Source of the DNA: Rhodosorus marinus CCMP1338
Lineage: Eukaryota; Plantae; Rhodophyta
Assembly (NCBI GenBank): GCA_029953675.1
Contig: JAMWBK010000003.1
Location: forward strand, 992,001-1,056,000
Reading direction: 5' to 3'
DNA length: 64,000 nucleotides
How positions within the stretch are numbered: position 1 is the first letter of the stretch; every line of letters begins with the position of its first letter. The notes beneath the pieces are model-generated. The model was given only the letters and a program-made list of their open reading frames with translations. It was not told the origin of the DNA and did no database searches. Below are positions 19,721-27,358 of the stretch, piece by piece. A program made the translations under genes and the position numbers.

Positions 19721-21042
19721 ATGATGGGGTTTGTTGCTGTGGGAGGTGGCCGCAGTGCTGGACTGAAGGAGTTGAGGTACTGCGGTAGGATTGTGACAGG
19801 AAAGGTTGAGGGTCAGAAGGTTTTGGATAGGCGCTGTTCGGGTGTCGTTAGAGCTGGTTTAGAAGAAGTAGAGGGAGAACAGCGGTTGGCACCATCTCCG
19901 CAGCCTGGGTCCGAGTTGGAATATGTGAGGAAGGCTGTTTTTGGTGAGTGGGTTTTCGTATTGGGCTTTTGAGTGAGGTTGGGACTGAATTCCGTTTGGA
20001 ACTCTATTGATGTCTGGCAGGTGTAATCGTATCGCTGCTCTTTCTAATATGGCCTCTGATGAATTCGGTTACATTTGCCGCGGTTTTAACGGCCCTTTGT
20101 GTCCTTGGGCAACACTACTACTATCGGACGGCAGAGTCACAGTCATACCTACCAGCTAGGCGAACGGGCCTAATCACAACTATGCTGATGATGTTTACGA
20201 TTATGTATGCACCTGCCTACTCAACTGCGGTGATCCCTATCTGTAGCACGTTGATCTGCTGCTATCTGCTGTTCCGCGAGAATCCCCGGATTGCAACCAT
20301 AGCAGATTTGTCGACCACTTTGGCTGGACTGTTCTACGCAGCGTAAGGAAGAAGACCTGAGCCATGACAGAGTATTGAGTATTTCTCGCTGATACATGGT
20401 ACTCGTCTACGCTCTTTGTCATTTCAGACTCCTTCCATCCTTTTACGTCCGACTGCACATGTTGGACTACCTGAGCTCCACCAGACTGCGTCTGTGGTTT
20501 GATGCTCATGGTGTTCACTCATTTCTCGGCTCGGTTCCAACCTCTGGCGCTCTCACCATTTTCATGACCTTCGTTGTTGGTGGGGCTTCTGACCTCATTC
20601 ACCGACTGACTGTGTTCCTGCTTCCCGAATTCAAGCAAAAAACTGCAGTGGGATACGCCATCTGGTAGGTTCGGTCTTTCCGGAGAACGAACAAGCTCTT
20701 TGTTTTACTGGAAACTTTGTTTTACTGGAAACACTAAGCTCTGTACTGTGGGCTCTGACGACTTTTACCATCCAAAAACTCAACAGGATTATCTGCAATA
20801 TGGCGCTCAACATGGCGACTGCCTATTTCCTTAGCTGGAGAAACTGGAAGATTTACGGAGTGATGTACGGTACTCTGTTTTCACTTTGTGGACTCATCGG
20901 TCGCCTAGCGGCCCCCATGTTTGAGCGGGCGGAAGAAGACGGAGAAGAAATCGTCTCCTACAGAAATATCTTTAAAAGAACGGATAGCTATATGTTCCTC
21001 GCTCCACTCGCGTATTACTTTGTGGTCTTGACGCAAAGTTAA
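19721..21042 (+). CDS. Plastid phosphatidate cytidylyltransferase (CdsA/CDS4-5)-like membrane protein with degenerate catalytic motifs (345 aa, 4 exons)
   Basis: Exons 19721-19943, 20021-20342, 20428-20664, 20787-21042 join in frame. IADLSTTLAGLFYAALLPSFYVRL and RTDSYMFLAPLAYYF align with plastid CDS. Transit-like start MMGFVAVGG. Confidence 0.82.
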
Positions 21043-21510: not shown

Positions 21511-23435
21511 TTACATGCGGAAAGTGTCTCTTATTTGGGCATAGGCCAAAGCGATCATTTGCATTCGCTCCAGCCCTGCCTCCCCAATGTTCGGGTTCAG
21601 ATCCGGGTGGAACTTCATTGCCATGGATCTGTAGGCTTTCTTCACCGTCCTAAGGTCTGCGCCGTCCTCGATGCCCAGGATTCTATACGAATCGATGTCC
21701 GCGTACTTATTCTGGCTATCACTAGAACCGCTGAAGCGGTCTCCTTGTCCACCTCCAAAGCCTCTCGCACCCCTCTGCCAGTGCCAATGAGTAGAACGGG
21801 ATCTCGTCTTGAAGTCCCCTTCTGGCACGAACCATTCTTGGTTGAATCCCTTCTCCCTCCACTCCAAGCGATCCTTTTGCCACAGGTTCCTGTAGGTAGG
21901 GAATGTTTGCAGATTTGTATTAGTGATCCAGTTAACCTTCGAACCCCCAAAATCCGAGCAACCGCTACCACTCACCAATATCCTTCCCATTCTTCGTCGT
22001 CCCATCCCGGTATGTCCCAGTCGCTATTGTCGGAGATCCAGTTTTCCCACTCTTCCTTCGAGAACGAATTCACCTTCTTATGAAATCCTTCGCCAGTCGC
22101 GCCGTTTTGTTTCGCCATTAAGTGCATTTTCTTGTCCGAGTGCATATAGTTTCGGGTGCTTTGCCACTCGTCGAACGCCTGCTTGACCAAAGCGGTTGGT
22201 TGAATCAGCAATGCTGCAAAGACAAAGGAAGTACAAAATAAAGCCTGCGTTCCCTAGTGCGCTTGCAAAGCAACGCACCAAATCCGCACATTCATCCTCC
22301 CCTATGCAATCAGGCTCTTGGATACGAGCAACGTTGAAGACCTCCAGCTCCTTAGTTACACTATGCTCAGTTATATGTTGCATGTTCTCCCTCTGTACTC
22401 CAAGACCATGCAAATACCTAAAAAGCCACTCCTTATCCTTTTCGTTTGACATGCACGCAATGACGGATTCCTAACACAACACAGTCGCATTACCAGTCAG
22501 ACCGTGAAATTGCCGTCGGAGCCTCGACTTGGGCACTGTTGTCGTGTTTCAACTTGTGTGCATGCTTACCGTCTCAATAGTCGAGGTGTCCAGCGGGTTC
22601 AGCCGCAGATAATCTAGAAAAGGTTCAAACACTGGTACAACGTCTACCCCATAAATCATCCAGTCTCGGAACTCATTCAAGAACGGGGGTTGACTGGGCG
22701 ACTTGAAGTACATGTAAATCTTGACTTGAACTTTCCGATTTGTGCCGCTCCCAGATGCGACGCGGAAGTGACCCCATGTAGCGAAAGATCTCATCGCAGC
22801 TGCACCCTGCAAATCGAAATCGTGAAGCGTCCGAAGCCAGGGTCAGACCTCTGAGAGAACAAACCAACAAATTTCAAAGCACCAGAACAACAACAGTCTC
22901 GTACCTGAGCACAATCGACGAACATGAGCAGGCGTGGGCCTGATACGGTCGGTTCGACGGACAAACCGTTGCCAATCACAGTACTAACTTCGAGGACGTC
23001 GCCAACCATAATCTTCGAGAGACCACCAGCATCGTGCGTAGAGTCAACCAAAAATTGCAGCCTCTCGCTCTCTGGAGGAGAAGCTACGACTAGCACACTT
23101 GATAGGTCCCGCCCCACTCGATTCACAAGTACGAACTGGCCAGGCTTCTTATGCGTCCAATTCAAATCCCCGGAGTCTACAGTAATCTGCATATGGTTTC
23201 CATAGCGGGAGCCGCAAACGGGACGGACATCCACTACTCTCGCTTGAAGTGCTTCTCCAACGCGCTCCTTCTGAGGTCTCACTTGATCAAAATCCTTGTT
23301 AACCCGCTTCAGAAAAAAGCTCCTCTTAACATCCTTCAGCACCGAGACCACAACCCGGCGCTCACCCCTCCTCTTCAGATCCGGTCTTCCTTTCCCAGGC
23401 CGAGTTACCAAACCGCCCCCAATCACAAACGCCAT
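21511..23435 (-). CDS. Plastid-targeted FNR-like (FAD/NAD-binding fold) + Trp-rich linker + C-terminal DnaJ domain fusion (509 aa, 5 exons)
   Basis: Exons 23435-22905, 22806-22570, 22470-22326, 22213-21976, 21889-21511 total 1530 nt in frame. N-half KPGQFV..VVASPP..LQFLV..VGDVLEVSTVIGNG resembles pKIWI502/At1g15140-type oxidoreductases. C-terminal YRILGI..VKKAYRSMAMKFHPD is a J-domain. Confidence 0.8.
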
Positions 23436-26292
23436 CGCGGTAATCCCACCAACTGTCAAGCAAAACACCCCCACAGAATACAACGTCAGTCCAATAAACC
23501 TCCCTCCCACCCCCCCCCACCCCCACCCTCCCTCCTGCGCACCCTGTCCAAACTCCCTCCTCAAATCCTCCTATTTGTATAAAACACCACAAGCCTTCCA
23601 CCTCAAAAAATTGCAACCAGCCTCCTCACCCTTGTCTTCTCCTTTTCCTTCCACTTCCGCCAACTTCTCGCCCCTTTCATCTATCATGACATGAAACACT
23701 CTTTTCAAAACCCTCTTGCCATTTTCCAGCCGCATTTCAACTCTCATTCAACCTTCAAAAGAAAGAAAAAACTAACGCCTTACCCCCCTCCCTCTCCCTT
23801 CTACCACCTGTCCTGCGGGTTAACGCCAAACTCCTATACCCCCCTTTCAATGAACCCTCCAAAGTGGAAATGCCTATTAATTTTGAAAATAGAATCATGT
23901 TCTTCTTCTCGATCCTTCTAACCCCCTTCCCACACTCCGACTCTCCCATCTCGGAATAGGTGCAAGCACATTCCTCCTCCACCCTTGCAAGATTCTTTAT
24001 GAAATGGAAATACTTGAATTTTATATTATTATTAAGAATATCTCGTTTTGTATCACATCAGTTTGACCCCATCGTTAGGATCCAGCTAAATATCAGACAG
24101 GTTTTCTGATATTAACAAAAACGACTATAAAAGACCAGCTAACTTCCGCCACCCCTTTATTTGCCGTCTAAGTTTGACCGGGAGAATCATGTTCTTTTGA
24201 AATAAAAAGAGATCTACGCGGATCGGGGTACTCAGTATTCTTGTTTTTTGGTAACTTTAGGAATGCGGATGTGGGGGGCAGTGTTTCTTATTTCACGGGG
24301 GGTGCACTTGCGGATAACCTTGTTGATTTACAAAACAGTCAGACCGTTTTTCTTCTTGATGAAATTTGCAGAATTTCATTTCAAATGGGGTTGCGTAGAT
24401 ACTACATCGCTGCTTATTGAGAGAATCTGGTTGGTGATATCAGTTAATTCCAATCAGTATAAGAATGAATTATAGTAAATGTATTAAGGTTAGTTAAAAT
24501 TAGTGAGAAATGATTGGTGACAGGGTATACTAGTTCAACCGTCATTGGTAATGTCTTTTCCTTATCACCCAAAACTGATTTTACCCCCACATCTTCAAGG
24601 AGATCAAAATCCCATGTAGTCAGGGAATCCGGGGGGTTGTGGGGGGGGGGGGGGTGGATTGGAAATGTAGTGACCCTTCGGGCGGGGGTGTTGGAACTGA
24701 TATAGACTGAAAAAGATCAACTTCTGCAGAGGAAATAATGTCAGTTGTCAATTCAACACCTCCAGCCCCACCCCCCCAACCCGGTACTCCTTGTTTCCAA
24801 TATCTGAACACTATGGAAACTAATTTCCGTTGATTATTTTACACTTTGAATAAATTCAGAATTAATAATTTAATATTGATGTTCTGTATTCCAATCAATG
24901 ATGAATCTAAGCCTCGTGATCGATTTCTATTCGGAGAAATTCTTAAATGACTGATGGGGTGCTTGTATTATTGTTATTCAGGAAAATTGTTAGGTACCTC
25001 AATCGGTGTCAGTCGCTAGCTCGGAATTGCCTCCTTCTATTGGATCAAGAAGACTCAAGGGGCTGCGCGAGTAGTCTAGCGGAGATGGATGGGTGCCTGT
25101 CGCTCAGTAGCTGGCTGTCCAACTTATACTGCAATGGCGTGTTCCATTTTGCTGAATATACTCCTTGAATTTTGAAGATGAAATAGGTGTGTTTGCTAGC
25201 TTGTTAATTGGCATTTTCGGGCCAAGACTGATTGTAGAGCAAACAGCAGATGACTTTTCTCTTTGCAGATGACTGAATGGCTTCCTCACGTGCGGAGCTA
25301 TTCCGTACCCTTTCTTGCTGGTTTACCCGGCTCGTCAAGTGCTTGCCATTCTCATTGAAGGTAAGCGTCGATGGGTGTGCTTGGAAGAACCAGAGCCATG
25401 GCCTAACATCCAGGTGGGTATGTTATGATGTTTACGGAAGTCTTTTTGCTTTCGTCCTACTTGGCTTTGTCACGTCTCGCGGAGGTGCAGGCCAATCCAT
25501 GCAGATGCACGCTTGGTCTTGCTATGGTTCATGACGGCAAGAGGTCTGGGGGGTCTTAGATTTGCCCAAAACCTCCGCGACAGTGAAGAGGGCCATGGTC
25601 CCCTCTCCAACATCTACTTGTTATTAAGATCACCCTCCAACTGAATCGAGCTTACTACGCTCTGAGGCCCTAAAAAGCCACTTAGTCTAAAGCGTGAGTT
25701 GATTATTAAGCTTGCGATGTTCCAATAGATACTTCGCAGCGAGTACACCGTACCTAAATCCAAAAATGAAGCATCTCGCTTTTTTCACGCACGATCAGGA
25801 AGCACTGTGCGACTAATATTTAGAGGTATCCATCCGAGGCCTCCCGTGCATACCCGAACTCGCAAAACAATCCCGGATACGTCACTATTCGTCTCTCAGC
25901 TCTTTGCGATCAAACCCTAACAATAATTCAAAAACAAGAGGAACAAAGTCGACGAAACGCGCCCAACGAAAGGTGGAAGCCCTTCCAATACTCTACAGGG
26001 TACCTCATGTGAGGTACCCATAGCCACCCCGTCCCCCCTAAGCCTCACAGCCGCGACAGCAGTATGCAATACCTTCAACCGAATCAAGACCTCGACCTCA
26101 GTGAAGTACACATAACAAAAAACTACAAAAAACAAGCCAACCCAACCGGCCGTTGTATCTTTAAAAAGCCCCAAACTCCACTTCCCGTTCTAACAGTTTT
26201 TACCAATTTAGACAACAAAACCGTTGCTGACAGTGCAAATTGTGCTTTTACAATCAAAACCCAAGAAGAAAAACTGGAATCCAGAAAGTCGA

Positions 26293-26468: not shown

Positions 26469-26785
26469 GCGTATTTATGTTGATGTTTTTGAGTTGGTTG
26501 AGGAAGGAGGGTGGTAACGTCGGGAGTACTATTTCGTGTGTGTGCGGGGTGGCGGGGGGGAGGGGGCGAAGGAGGGGGAGGAAATGGTGGTGAACTTTTT
26601 GGATGTGAGATATTAGATCGGCAGCGGTGTTACTAGTTTTTGGATTGGTAAGAGTCGTTCGGTTTTAGCAATTTTTGGCTTGGAAGAGAAGGAGGCAAAA
26701 GAGTCTTGTTTGACAGGAAGAGTTTCAGTGATTGGTTTTTTTTTTTTTGTTTGTTGTCCGTGGTTGTCGAGGAGTTGGAGGGGGA

Positions 26786-27358
26786 ATGGGGTGTGGTTCG
26801 TCAAAGGAAGACGGTGGAGGGGCTGCTGAGGCTCTGAGCTGGGATGGGATGGTGAAGAACCCTAAGACTTGGGAATTGGAGAGAGCAGTACAAACTGAGC
26901 ATTTGCAGAGAATGCGGGCAGAGTTCTGGGAAACAAGGGTTGAAGGTAGGGAGGAGATGTGGGTTGCTTTGATGGCTGCGGCTGACGCCGATTCGGTAAG
27001 TGATTCTGTTGCTCTCTGGTTGATGCTGGGCATGCTCGACTGTGCTTTGACTACCAGTATGTTCTTCAGAAACGTAGTGATCCGGTTTCTCAACCACTTG
27101 TATTTCCAATGCCTAACCCAGGACGAGCTCAGGTTTCAAATAGTCGACGCTGCCGGGATCCAACCGGCTCTGAAAAGAAAGACACTGGAGCTTGTATACG
27201 ATGAAAGAGGAGCGATATATGAAGTTCCCATCTATTGCTTAAGCGCACCTTCGAACGTTGATGGAGAGAACGCCTGCGAAGAAATGAAGGACGCGCGTTT
27301 CTATCTCCAAGGGTATTATGAAAGCCATCGGCCCAAACTTGTGGGTCACCGTATGTAA
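26786..27358 (+). CDS. UBTD/DC-UbP-like ubiquitin-binding-domain protein, N-acylated (2 exons)
   Basis: MGCGSSK myristoylation/palmitoylation motif; LQRMRAEFWETRVEGREEMWVALMAAA; VYDERGAIYEVPIYCLSAPSN matches the UBTD N-terminal UBD. Confidence 0.85.
   Translation: MGCGSSKEDGGGAAEALSWDGMVKNPKTWELERAVQTEHLQRMRAEFWETRVEGREEMWVALMAAADADSVSDSVALWLMLGMLDCALTTSMFFRNVVIRFLNHLYFQCLTQDELRFQIVDAAGIQPALKRKTLELVYDERGAIYEVPIYCLSAPSNVDGENACEEMKDARFYLQGYYESHRPKLVGHRM

Follow-up and report, generated by a model that had tools for sequence, protein, structure and literature searches.

The window analysed here, a 64,000-nucleotide stretch of contig JAMWBK010000003.1 from Rhodosorus marinus CCMP1338, contains a nuclear gene on the minus strand that runs from an ATG at 23435, the first ATG in its open frame, to a TAA stop codon at 21511-21513 and comprises five exons separated by GT-AG introns, as had been proposed in an earlier note on this DNA. 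All features given below by their positions in the window lie on the minus strand. The corrected coding sequence forms one open frame for a product of 513 residues, in which an FNR-like domain is followed by an acidic segment rich in Trp, a spacer rich in Gly and, at the C-terminus, a J-domain. The product matches residues 46-558 of the R. marinus protein NCBI KAJ8906570.1 (P0007) with 100% identity. Exon 1 (22905..23435, aa 1-177, identical to P0007 on translation) encodes a transit-like leader of the F type (MAFVIGGG...) and the FNR-like domain as far as ..FVDCAQ, namely its FAD-barrel half and the initial strand of its NAD-like half. Intron 1 (22807..22904, 98 nt, GTACGA...GCAG, phase 0) is kept unspliced at the same position in a transcript fragment (P0032, ..FVDSAQ|VRW). 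Exon 2 (22570..22806, aa 178-256) provides a GAAAMRSF helix, the insert SGSGTNR and a strand containing W226, and is separated by intron 2 (22471..22569, 99 nt, GTAAGC...TTAG, phase 0) from exon 3 (22279..22470, aa 257-320), which completes the FNR-like domain and opens a long linker helix. An AFDEW helix, a variable linker and the first half of a tryptophan ladder (W364, W367, N371, W374, W379, W384, Y387, W388) are encoded in exon 4 (21976..22178, aa 321-388). After intron 4 (21890..21975, 86 nt, GTGAGT...ACAG, phase 2), exon 5 (21511..21889, aa 388-513 plus the stop codon) adds the remaining ladder residues (W391, W398), an HWHW motif, a Gly-rich disordered spacer and the J-domain. Scans for tRNAs, Rfam families and tandem repeats were empty or irrelevant.

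While introns 1, 2 and 4 have exactly the lengths given in the earlier note, intron 3 had to be moved. It had been assigned to 22325-22214 (GTATCC donor, 112 nt, junction 22326/22213), yielding a product of 509 residues, but a transcript from another R. marinus strain (P0001), P0007 and the family alignment all place it at 22179..22278 (100 nt, GTGCGT...GCAG, phase 0), so that the junction is 22279/22178. According to P0001 and P0007, exon 3 ends with ...EDECADL at the GTGCGT donor at 22278, and the corrected junction reads ...EDECADL|AFDEWQ... in an open frame with the acceptor at 22179. Its three supports are the identity to KAJ8906570.1, the family alignment and the MMETSP transcript P0001 itself, which reads ...EEECADLAFDEWQ... 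(ECADL|AFDEW over the junction). The GTGCGT donor had been dismissed before because it was paired solely with the acceptor at 22214; that combination is indeed out of frame and leads to a stop, whereas the frame stays open with the acceptor at 22179.

P0001 is a full-length MMETSP transcript with 89% identity over 100% of the length, and together with the NCBI model and orthologues of the same architecture it confirms that the locus is one fused gene. Two further contigs from the MMETSP strain encode proteins without J-domain: P0002, with intron 3 left in, codes for 376 residues, and P0009, in which intron 4 is unspliced, codes for 383, its stop following GYW directly. In the gene studied here, retention of intron 3 would lead to a stop at 22078-22080 and a J-less protein of 386 residues, and retention of intron 4 to a TGA straight after ..GYW. 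Read-through transcripts of this kind had been named in advance as evidence against a fusion. They do exist, but the fused frame is conserved across the red algae sampled, and the fusion is therefore not an artefact. In view of the J-less transcripts, part of the gene output may act without Hsp70.

The NCBI gene model contains an additional upstream exon (23630..23747) that places 45 residues before MAFV. Orthologue N-termini do not support this extension and align at the ATG at 23435, and the upstream exon is probably a non-coding leader. The extension in the public annotation would bury the transit peptide and thus constitutes a gene-model problem. A Phe aligned with F3 of the window protein, mostly two to six residues from a Met, is present in 25 of the 31 aligned family members. 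This fits the F-based motif of rhodophyte plastid targeting (PMC7038456) and renders the transit peptide originally read from MAFVIGGG plausible. The related FNRL protein is plastid-localised (PMC11500984). A signal peptide followed by a Phe motif, considered with regard to a secondary-plastid origin, was not clear in any family member. We infer from these N-termini that the R. marinus protein resides in the plastid.

Counterparts of the R. marinus locus exist in other genomes. Word-indexed protein searches with the full protein, a profile of the N-terminal domain and a 16-sequence family profile returned almost only Rhodosorus sequences, and it was solely an exhaustive HMMER profile search of 1.84 billion proteins that revealed the family, because the word-indexed searches are too insensitive. 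Among its 197 matches, the best approximately 35 are proteins of 445-788 residues with the same architecture, and at least 35 clusters share the FNR-like/Trp-ladder/J arrangement. FNRL-like proteins follow as the next-best matches. All named members stem from red algae (Cyanidium, Galdieria, Pyropia, Hildenbrandia, Agarophyton, Timspurckia and Bangiopsis), and the family spans six red-algal classes, from Cyanidium to the florideophytes; the distribution in red-lineage algae had been suggested as a check. In the databases, members are labelled 'hypothetical protein', 'J domain-containing protein' or 'FAD-binding FR-type domain-containing protein'. The suspicion that a fusion of an FNR fold with a J-domain had not been described agrees with our literature search, in which no paper on it was found: it is absent from a paper on the evolution of chloroplast J-proteins and from a large survey of J-domain proteins, and general searches gave nothing. 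FNR-like/Trp-ladder/J proteins are an uncharacterised, conserved family across red algae.

The N-terminal part of the protein (22339..23270, aa 56-300, spanning introns 1 and 2) is a two-domain module with a FAD-barrel half (aa 56-165) and an NAD-like half (aa 166-300). Its resemblance to the FNR-superfamily fold of pKIWI502/At1g15140, noted from the letters alone, is confirmed by profile and structure comparison. Alignment with the FNRL-like family by hhalign gave a probability of 99.9% (E 2.2e-35, 225 columns); this family was named via a cloning primer for At1g15140 that encodes the C-terminus ..KLLKNF. An AF2 model built on a 31-sequence alignment has block-mean pLDDT values of mostly 80-95 over aa 60-300 and replaced a poor model from three sequences (pLDDT 46.5). 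When compared with the PDB by Foldseek, the top matches of the module all belong to the FNR superfamily (E 6e-12 to 1e-10 over 250-270 aligned columns, with a TM of up to 0.74 when normalised to the target) and comprise the SpNOX dehydrogenase domain, P. falciparum FNR, R. capsulatus FPR and the gamma subunit of P. furiosus SHI. The model from the shallow alignment gave a similar list. A two-domain FNR fold is therefore present. At the sequence level, the profile of the N-terminal domain found nothing significant among PDB sequences, with the FAD domain of MMOR (E 1.7) as the best relevant match, and the J-family profile matched no PDB flavoprotein, while the FNRL profile detects PDB reductases at 1e-17 to 1e-12 and flavoproteins at up to 8e-17. 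As judged from the alignments, the N-terminal domain is homologous to FNRL over the whole two-domain module of about 225-250 residues, with PGQ(F/Y)VQ, (A/T)IASPP, EFLV, S-V-M-G-x-GF and a W/G-V-x-V-V-P-V strand in common. FNRL, a predicted NADPH dehydrogenase (PMC11500984), is a stand-alone protein of about 300 residues, whereas the R. marinus protein carries some 210 extra residues that make up the Trp ladder, the spacer and the J-domain. By sequence, the J-fusion family should be regarded as derived and as sister or paralogous to FNRL, not as its orthologue.

Excluding the initiator Met, 16 of 36 positions conserved in at least 90% of FNRL sequences are retained in the J-fusion family. It is mainly the NAD(P) half and the C-terminus that are affected: compared with FNRL, the R. 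marinus protein lacks TGSGISP, YYGAR (family-wide, YYG including the Arg), GYVQ, LCGxKxM (LCGxxxM) and the terminal N-F, which is replaced by continuation into a helix. The earlier note had already pointed at VDCAQGAAA where FNRL has ATGSGISP, and the alignment bears this out. The degenerate nucleotide-binding loop DCAQGAAA (22795..22916, aa 174-181, split by intron 1) occupies the position of TGSGISP, and the GxGxxP loop for the NAD(P)H pyrophosphate is missing. The window protein reads A-Q-G-A-A-A there and the family [PA]-Q-G-x-A-A, and none of the 16 compared sequences has kept the first Gly or the Pro of the motif. Within the loop, D174 and A180 never vary, and 29 of 31 members have G178. 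The family has gained an insert of seven residues with an invariant G-x-G-x-x-R that is absent from FNRL (SGSGTNR in the window, 22735..22755, aa 195-201, with G196, G198 and R201 invariant; SGxGANR in its general form). With the invariant D174, A180, G196, G198, R201 and W226, the NAD-like half is better conserved than any other part of the FNR-like domain; it shares 96% identity between Rhodosorus strains and 52% with Bangiopsis, which comes close to the 98% and 58% of the J-domain. That the motifs of the NAD(P)H site are lost, yet the half that contained them is the most conserved one, argues for a repurposed binding surface and neither for a relic nor for a working reductase, and reductase activity has probably been lost. 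In the FAD-barrel half most of the residues conserved in FNRL are retained, among them PGQF, ASPP and S-V-M-G-x-G, so that the domain may still bind a flavin. The RxYS motif is not present, the position reading V-L-V-V-A-S-P-P, but FNRL also lacks R, Y and S there (F-L-A-I-A-S-P-P), so that motifs are a weak guide to FAD.

The acidic Trp-rich linker and the G-rich spacer described from the first reading are evident in the translation of the single frame. Twelve of the 16 Trp residues of the protein lie within aa 311-430, and the Trp ladder proper (21847..22058, aa 361-402) spans intron 4. It has seven invariant positions, among them W364, W367, N371, W374, W384 and W391, and one helix face bears W384, Y387, W388, W391, R395 and W398, such that the Trp residues form one-sided stripes on amphipathic helices; AF2 models these helices at pLDDT 55-80 only. 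A profile of the ladder had no matches in the PDB or NCBIfam. An Fe-S or zinc site formed by the linker cysteines was considered and is ruled out, since C311 and C317, the linker's only cysteines, are not conserved in Bangiopsis.

The J-domain (21514..21699, aa 452-513) was matched by phmmer to PDB J-domains at about 1e-7 over aa 451-510. Its HPD motif (21601-21609, aa 482-484) is intact, as first read, and H482, P483 and D484 do not vary among 31 sequences, with the KKAYR helix II invariant or nearly so. AF2 places helices at 467-481 and 491-512, with block-mean pLDDT values of about 86-94 over aa 461-510. In Rhodosorus the domain ends four residues after helix III without helix IV, which most other members possess. 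NCBIfam DnaJ models matched only over their first 55 or so of about 354-374 positions, precomputed Pfam annotation consists of PF00226 only, and neither a G/F region nor a zinc finger nor a DnaJ C-terminal domain is present. By its domain content, the protein is a class C (type III) J-domain protein.

J-domain proteins decide on the targets of Hsp70, and several class C proteins combine the J-domain with a dedicated client domain, such as CDJ2 (VIPP1), J20 (DXS) and HscB/Jac1 (IscU). The R. marinus protein resembles these in joining an HPD-containing J-domain to a non-DnaJ, putatively client-specific module. It differs from them in that this putative module is an FNR-fold pseudo-enzyme with a Trp ladder and in that the J-domain is C-terminal. 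The reading that we favour, with a probability of roughly 0.6, is that of a plastid class C J-protein in which a former reductase module and the Trp ladder direct Hsp70 (DnaK) to a specific partner. The nuclear-encoded protein would be imported into the plastid. Its FNR-like domain, descended from the plastid oxidoreductase FNRL but with an invariant loop of its own and no NAD(P)H-site signature any more, would form together with the helical Trp ladder a module for binding a specific partner or client and would not act as a reductase. The disordered Gly-rich spacer would tether this module to the J-domain, the HPD loop of which would stimulate ATP hydrolysis by plastid Hsp70 (DnaK), and Hsp70 would thereby be loaded onto whatever the N-terminal module holds. 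Recruitment of Hsp70 and the existence of a dedicated client are inferred.

It is possible, albeit with a clearly smaller probability, that the protein is, in line with the idea of the earlier note, a co-chaperone gated by a flavin or by redox state. The FNR-like domain would then bind FAD, a nucleotide-like ligand in the DCxQG/SGxGxNR site, or ferredoxin, and redox or ligand state would set where and when Hsp70 is recruited, making the protein a red-lineage functional analogue of CDJ3-5. The FAD-barrel half with its retained FNRL residues is consistent with this, as is the strong conservation of the remodelled nucleotide site, where a Gly-rich invariant loop with an Arg resembles a ligand site. 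However, several features conserved in FNRL are gone: GxGxxP has lost its first Gly and its Pro, YYGAR its Arg, and both GYVQ and the C-terminal NF are missing. There is also no sequence-level match to PDB flavoproteins. A precedent exists in CDJ5, the localisation of which depends on its Fe-S cluster according to a preprint (bioRxiv 10.1101/2025.08.22.671721). Like DnaJ-Fer/CDJ3-5, the R. marinus protein fuses a J-domain, here of inferred plastid location, to a module of photosynthetic electron transfer. DnaJ-Fer carries its J-domain at the N-terminus, ahead of a 4Fe-4S ferredoxin domain with CxxCxxC; in the R. marinus protein the order is reversed, a conserved Cys cluster is lacking and the FNR-like partner is probably cofactor-impaired. 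DnaJ-Fer was detected in all Viridiplantae with complete genomes and not in Rhodophyta (PMC3564930), and the named members of the family described here are all red algae; the distributions are complementary, but this is a correlation only. A more far-reaching idea, which we regard as speculative and slightly less probable still, is that red algae replaced the J/ferredoxin co-chaperones of the green lineage with an independently invented FNR-like/J protein. As part of this scenario, the DCxQG and SGxGANR site and the Trp ladder would serve to bind some component of photosynthetic electron transfer such as ferredoxin, or else a flavin or nucleotide, and the redox or metabolic state of the stroma would gate the recruitment of plastid-encoded DnaK.

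We consider it unlikely that the protein remodels an assembly or condensate in the manner of auxilin, with the pseudo-enzyme and the aromatic-rich linker binding to the surface of the thylakoid or to a plastid assembly of multivalent nature and the J-domain bringing in Hsp70 to assemble or disassemble, for example, a membrane oligomer or a light-harvesting or pyrenoid-type assembly. Auxilin/GAK use a dead enzyme-like domain, a motif-rich flexible linker and a C-terminal J-domain to direct Hsp70 to one assembly, and this layout is shared by the red-algal proteins. Auxilin/GAK are cytosolic and act on clathrin, and their PTEN-like domain is unrelated to the FNR-like one, so that the analogy is one of design only. 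The one-sided Trp stripes would suit such a role, and most members have a long S/G/N/Y/W low-complexity region between Trp ladder and J-domain that contains conserved short motifs (SQEYWDWVGxG, GGYRYEYEE, GWSGWNR). This region is, however, almost absent from Rhodosorus, Bangiopsis and some cyanidialean members and is therefore not a core feature. To our knowledge, Cyanidium and Galdieria, both represented in the family, have no pyrenoids, which argues against a pyrenoid-specific role. A plastid precedent is provided by CDJ2, which delivers VIPP1 to HSP70B according to the same preprint (bioRxiv 10.1101/2025.08.22.671721). It is very improbable that the fusion is a gene-model artefact of two adjacent genes, one FNR-like and one for DnaJ, or that the gene yields mainly J-less products by intron retention, because the J-less contigs P0002 and P0009, of a kind common in de novo RNA-seq assemblies, are opposed by the fully spliced P0001, the matching NCBI model and the same contiguous architecture in the orthologue clusters of all six classes.

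Few assignments of clients to plastid J-proteins are known to us, examples being CDJ2-VIPP1 and J20-DXS. If the favoured reading of a partner-directed class C J-protein holds, a former reductase with a newly invariant loop and a Trp ladder would be a clear case of the recruitment of an enzyme fold as a chaperone-targeting module. The family offers a testable entry point into plastid proteostasis in red algae and its possible coupling to electron transport. Should red algae indeed have replaced the J/ferredoxin co-chaperones of the green lineage, the protein would represent a lineage-specific link from photosynthetic electron flow to plastid proteostasis, and this link would be older than the split of the Cyanidiophyceae from the other red algae.

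Translation of the window places one minus-strand gene at 21511-23435. We rebuilt the five-exon model of the earlier note together with three alternatives for its third intron. The earlier choice for intron 3, a GTATCC donor at 22325 and an acceptor at 22214 (112 nt), keeps the frame open and gives 509 aa, and a GTGCGT donor at 22278 joined to a GCAG acceptor at 22179 (100 nt) also keeps it open and gives 513 aa. External evidence agrees with the latter: the 513-aa translation matches positions 46-558 of KAJ8906570.1 (hypothetical protein NDN08_003063, Rhodosorus marinus) residue for residue, and P0001, a full-length MMETSP transcript product from another R. marinus strain with 89% identity over 100% of the length, reads ...EEECADL/AFDEWQ... 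across the junction. The 112-nt intron and the 509-aa product are thus ruled out. The GTGCGT donor had been regarded as stop-producing because it was paired only with the 22214 acceptor; with the 22179 acceptor no stop arises. The other three introns stand, and the final structure comprises exons 23435-22905, 22806-22570, 22470-22279, 22178-21976 and 21889-21511 (minus strand), separated by introns of 98, 99, 100 and 86 nt with donors GTACGA, GTAAGC, GTGCGT and GTGAGT, acceptors that are all AG, and phases 0, 0, 0 and 2. The 199-aa transcript fragment P0032 reads ..LLFVDSAQ/VRWKHCERGES with an intron retained at the codon of intron 1 (22807-22904), so that this intron position is common to another species. 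Open frames on the plus strand at 26732-27358 (208 aa, with an internal ..MGCGSSKEDGG.. at residues 19-29 of a TTG-initiated ORF) and 20800-21042 (an 80-aa hydrophobic segment) probably belong to flanking genes as exons. Tandem repeats close to the gene are limited to a 17-nt unit in about 2.1 copies at 20698-20732, and the whole window (1-64000) contains neither tRNA genes nor Rfam families at the gathering threshold.

An exhaustive HMMER search with a profile of the N-terminal domain only against 1.84 billion representative proteins returned 197 matches at E <= 1e-3. The best ~35 of these, fragments aside, are 445-788 aa long and all share one order of elements: an F-type N-terminus, an FNR-like domain with F-[AV]-D-C-x-Q-G-x-A-A, the sequence S-G-x-G-A-N-R-T-T, a helix E-[DE]-x-I-W-x-x-W-V-x-x-R-x-x-M-R-x-E-F-E-x-K-W, a ladder Q-A-W-x-S-W-F-x-x-N-x-x-x-W-x-x-x-x-W-D-D-x-x-W-x-x-Y-W-x-x-W, usually an extended region of low complexity (S/G/N/Y/W) containing SQEYWDWVGxG, GGYRYEYEE and GWSGWNR, and a C-terminal J-domain. 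Members of this J-fusion family that carry an organism name come in every case from red algae, namely Stylonematophyceae (Bangiopsis, Rhodosorus), Porphyridiophyceae (Timspurckia), Bangiophyceae (Pyropia), Florideophyceae (Hildenbrandia, Agarophyton) and Cyanidiophyceae (Galdieria, Cyanidium). Databases label them only as hypothetical, 'J domain-containing' or 'FAD-binding FR-type domain-containing', and we found no description of the architecture in a paper on chloroplast J-protein evolution, a survey of ~280,000 J-domain proteins or through general full-text searches. We do not rate it as categorically new, since fusion of a J-domain to diverse client modules is a known principle.

The second tier of matches is a well-conserved family of 200-340 aa with the motifs PGQ[FY]VQ, KPxF[LF]AIASPP, EFL[VI]K, S-x-V-M-G-K-G-F, LLFATGSGISPI[RK], VRLYYGAR, W-E-x-x-G-V-x-V-[VI]-P-V-x-S, GYVQD and LCGxKxM, and with [IL]LxNF at the C-terminus. 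As the cloning primer for At1g15140 encodes ...KLLKNF (PMC11500984), this family is FNRL, the At1g15140/pKIWI502 oxidoreductase that has been shown to be plastid-localised and is cited as a predicted NADPH dehydrogenase (PMC11500984). When the profile of the J-fusion family was compared with that of FNRL, the probability was 99.9% (E 2.2e-35, 225 columns). AlphaFold2, run on a 31-sequence alignment, models aa 60-300 as a barrel of six strands and then a beta-alpha-beta domain (block-mean pLDDT mostly 80-95), and the top Foldseek matches are FNR-superfamily structures only (SpNOX dehydrogenase domain, Plasmodium FNR, Rhodobacter FPR, Pyrococcus SHI gamma; E 6e-12 to 1e-10, TM up to 0.74 on target), with a similar list for a shallow-alignment model. 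These results confirm that the earlier note placed the domain correctly in the pKIWI502/At1g15140 group. Sequence taken by itself says little about this domain: the family profile matched no flavoprotein among PDB sequences, and NCBIfam yielded only E ~1e-3 matches of the N-terminal domain to PyrK-like, ShyC and BenC reductase models. Two FNRL-like proteins have unusual layouts: in P0134 (521 aa) the barrel is separated from the remainder of the NAD domain by about six tandem copies of a unit similar to the nucleotide-binding loop (..VVAVGSGWLAAPLKG..), and in P0116 (575 aa) a canonical domain ending in ..ILTNF follows an Arg/Gly/Pro-rich N-terminal stretch of ~330 residues, which suggests an ORF called too long on high-GC DNA and not a real fusion.

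Merging both alignments, we found 36 FNRL positions conserved to at least 90% (initiator Met left out), 16 of which are retained in the J-fusion family. Most conserved barrel positions persist (P-G-Q, the S and P of ASPP, the L of FLV, S-x-x-x-G-x-G). In the NAD(P) half, T-G-S-G-I-S-P is replaced by [PA]-Q-G-x-A-A with loss of the first Gly, Ser, Ile and Pro; further losses are Gly in YYG, the residues S, Y and Q in the S...GYVQ region, Gly and Met in LCGxxxM, and the terminal N-F. The first helix of this half is followed by a seven-residue insert, S-G-x-G-A-N-R, that FNRL lacks. Still, the NAD(P) half is not decaying, judging from its identity of 96% between the two Rhodosorus strains and 52% to Bangiopsis, compared with 86% and 40% for the barrel half and 98% and 58% for the J-domain, and from the concentration of invariant residues there: of seven in the FNR-like domain, only G155 and G157 lie outside this half, which holds D174, A180, G196, G198 and R201 (the last three in the insert), plus the invariant W226. 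We interpret this as conversion of the NAD(P)H site into another putative binding surface that is under strong selection, and canonical reductase chemistry appears unlikely. As a rival explanation, the module may still sense flavin, redox state or ferredoxin, making the protein a red-lineage analogue of CDJ3-5, the green-lineage plastid proteins that combine a J-domain with a 4Fe-4S ferredoxin domain. The distribution of CDJ3-5, complementary to that of the J-fusion family, speaks for this idea (PMC3564930; some data on CDJ5 are given in bioRxiv 10.1101/2025.08.22.671721). Motifs do not decide about flavin binding, because FNRL itself lacks RxYS.

The segment first described as an acidic Trp-rich linker is indeed Trp-rich and proves to be more than a linker. 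Across 31 sequences W325, W364, W367, N371, W374, W384 and W391 are invariant and W322, W379, D380, Y387, W388 and W398 nearly so, and AlphaFold2 predicts helices at 314-344, 361-370 and 381-400 (pLDDT 55-80). W384, Y387, W388, W391, R395 and W398 of the last helix lie within ±60° on one face, and the modelled aromatic stripe would be suited to pack on another helix or on a partner with a flat surface. Searched with a profile of the module, neither PDB sequences nor NCBIfam gave a match. Disorder is predicted for residues 402-451, a spacer that is short in Rhodosorus and a low-complexity region of 100-250 residues in most other members. By analogy, it is conceivable that the protein follows an auxilin-like logic of assembly remodelling through the aromatic low-complexity region, a second rival explanation.

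Residues 452-513 match solved J-domains at about 1e-7, and H482, P483 and D484 are invariant along with much of helix II (K471, A473, Y474, A478), in agreement with the intact HPD reported before; for aa 461-510 the model reaches a block-mean pLDDT of about 86-94. DnaJ models match the J-domain portion only, which identifies a class-C protein. The protein of either Rhodosorus strain terminates four residues past helix III (..IRDTFRM and stop, window 21514-21525) and lacks helix IV, whose KRxxYDxxG motif is present in most other family members, including Bangiopsis. Transcripts ending before the J-domain, named in the earlier note as evidence against a fusion, do occur in the MMETSP strain, where intron 3 is kept in P0002 (376 aa) and intron 4, with a TGA right after GYW, in P0009 (383 aa); both products include the FNR-like domain. 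A fully spliced transcript is also present, however, and, carrying more weight, the architecture is kept across many species, all named ones being red algae, so that the single fused gene is upheld and the fusion is ancient and under selection; a modelling artefact or a gene making mainly J-less products is essentially excluded. The MMETSP isoforms, to which P0008 and P0010 also belong, comprise fully spliced, intron-3-retained and intron-4-retained transcripts, the retained forms being either regulated isoforms or unspliced RNA, and P0010 (160 aa) departs after ..SKIMAG.

Plastid import in rhodophytes and glaucophytes relies on a Phe-based motif at the N-terminus (PMC7038456; see also PMC2222254). 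A Phe aligned with F3 of the window protein is found in 25 of 31 family sequences, in most of them 2-6 residues past a Met (MAFV, MSPAFV, MAAFV, MEVAFI, MRCSFV), the remaining sequences being N-terminally truncated or extended upstream with an internal Met just ahead of the motif. A signal peptide ahead of the Phe motif would point to a complex plastid, and no family member offers a clear case of it. Taken with the location of FNRL, the conserved motif makes the plastid the best inference for the site of action. The NCBI model KAJ8906570.1 (558 aa) places 45 residues before MAFVIGGG, encoded by an exon at 23747-23630 (minus strand) spliced to 23452. Because this extension would bury the Phe motif, masking the transit peptide, and is absent from orthologues, which begin at the motif, we take ATG 23435 to be the true start; exon 23630-23747 and its intron are probably an untranslated leader mis-called as coding. 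A long G-run tract, GGGAGGGTGGGGGTGGGGGGGGGTGGGAGGGAGG, precedes the start codon by 65-100 nt on the coding strand (about 23500-23533, minus strand); it looks G-quadruplex-prone and falls within either the leader or the NCBI model's intron.

The best-supported mechanism, at a probability of roughly 0.6, is that of a class-C J-protein which works in the plastid and holds a partner for Hsp70 as set out below. In red algae the gene for plastid DnaK generally resides on the plastid genome. Plastid-genome-encoded HSP70 of Neopyropia is the subject of PMC10255470. Architecture, homology, motif changes and conservation are direct observations, whereas the location of the protein, its stimulation of Hsp70 and its specificity for a client are inferred: a specific partner would be held by the Trp ladder and the domain derived from FNRL, the flexible spacer would let the J-domain reach the plastid Hsp70 it recruits, and HPD-triggered ATP hydrolysis may then lock this DnaK on the partner.
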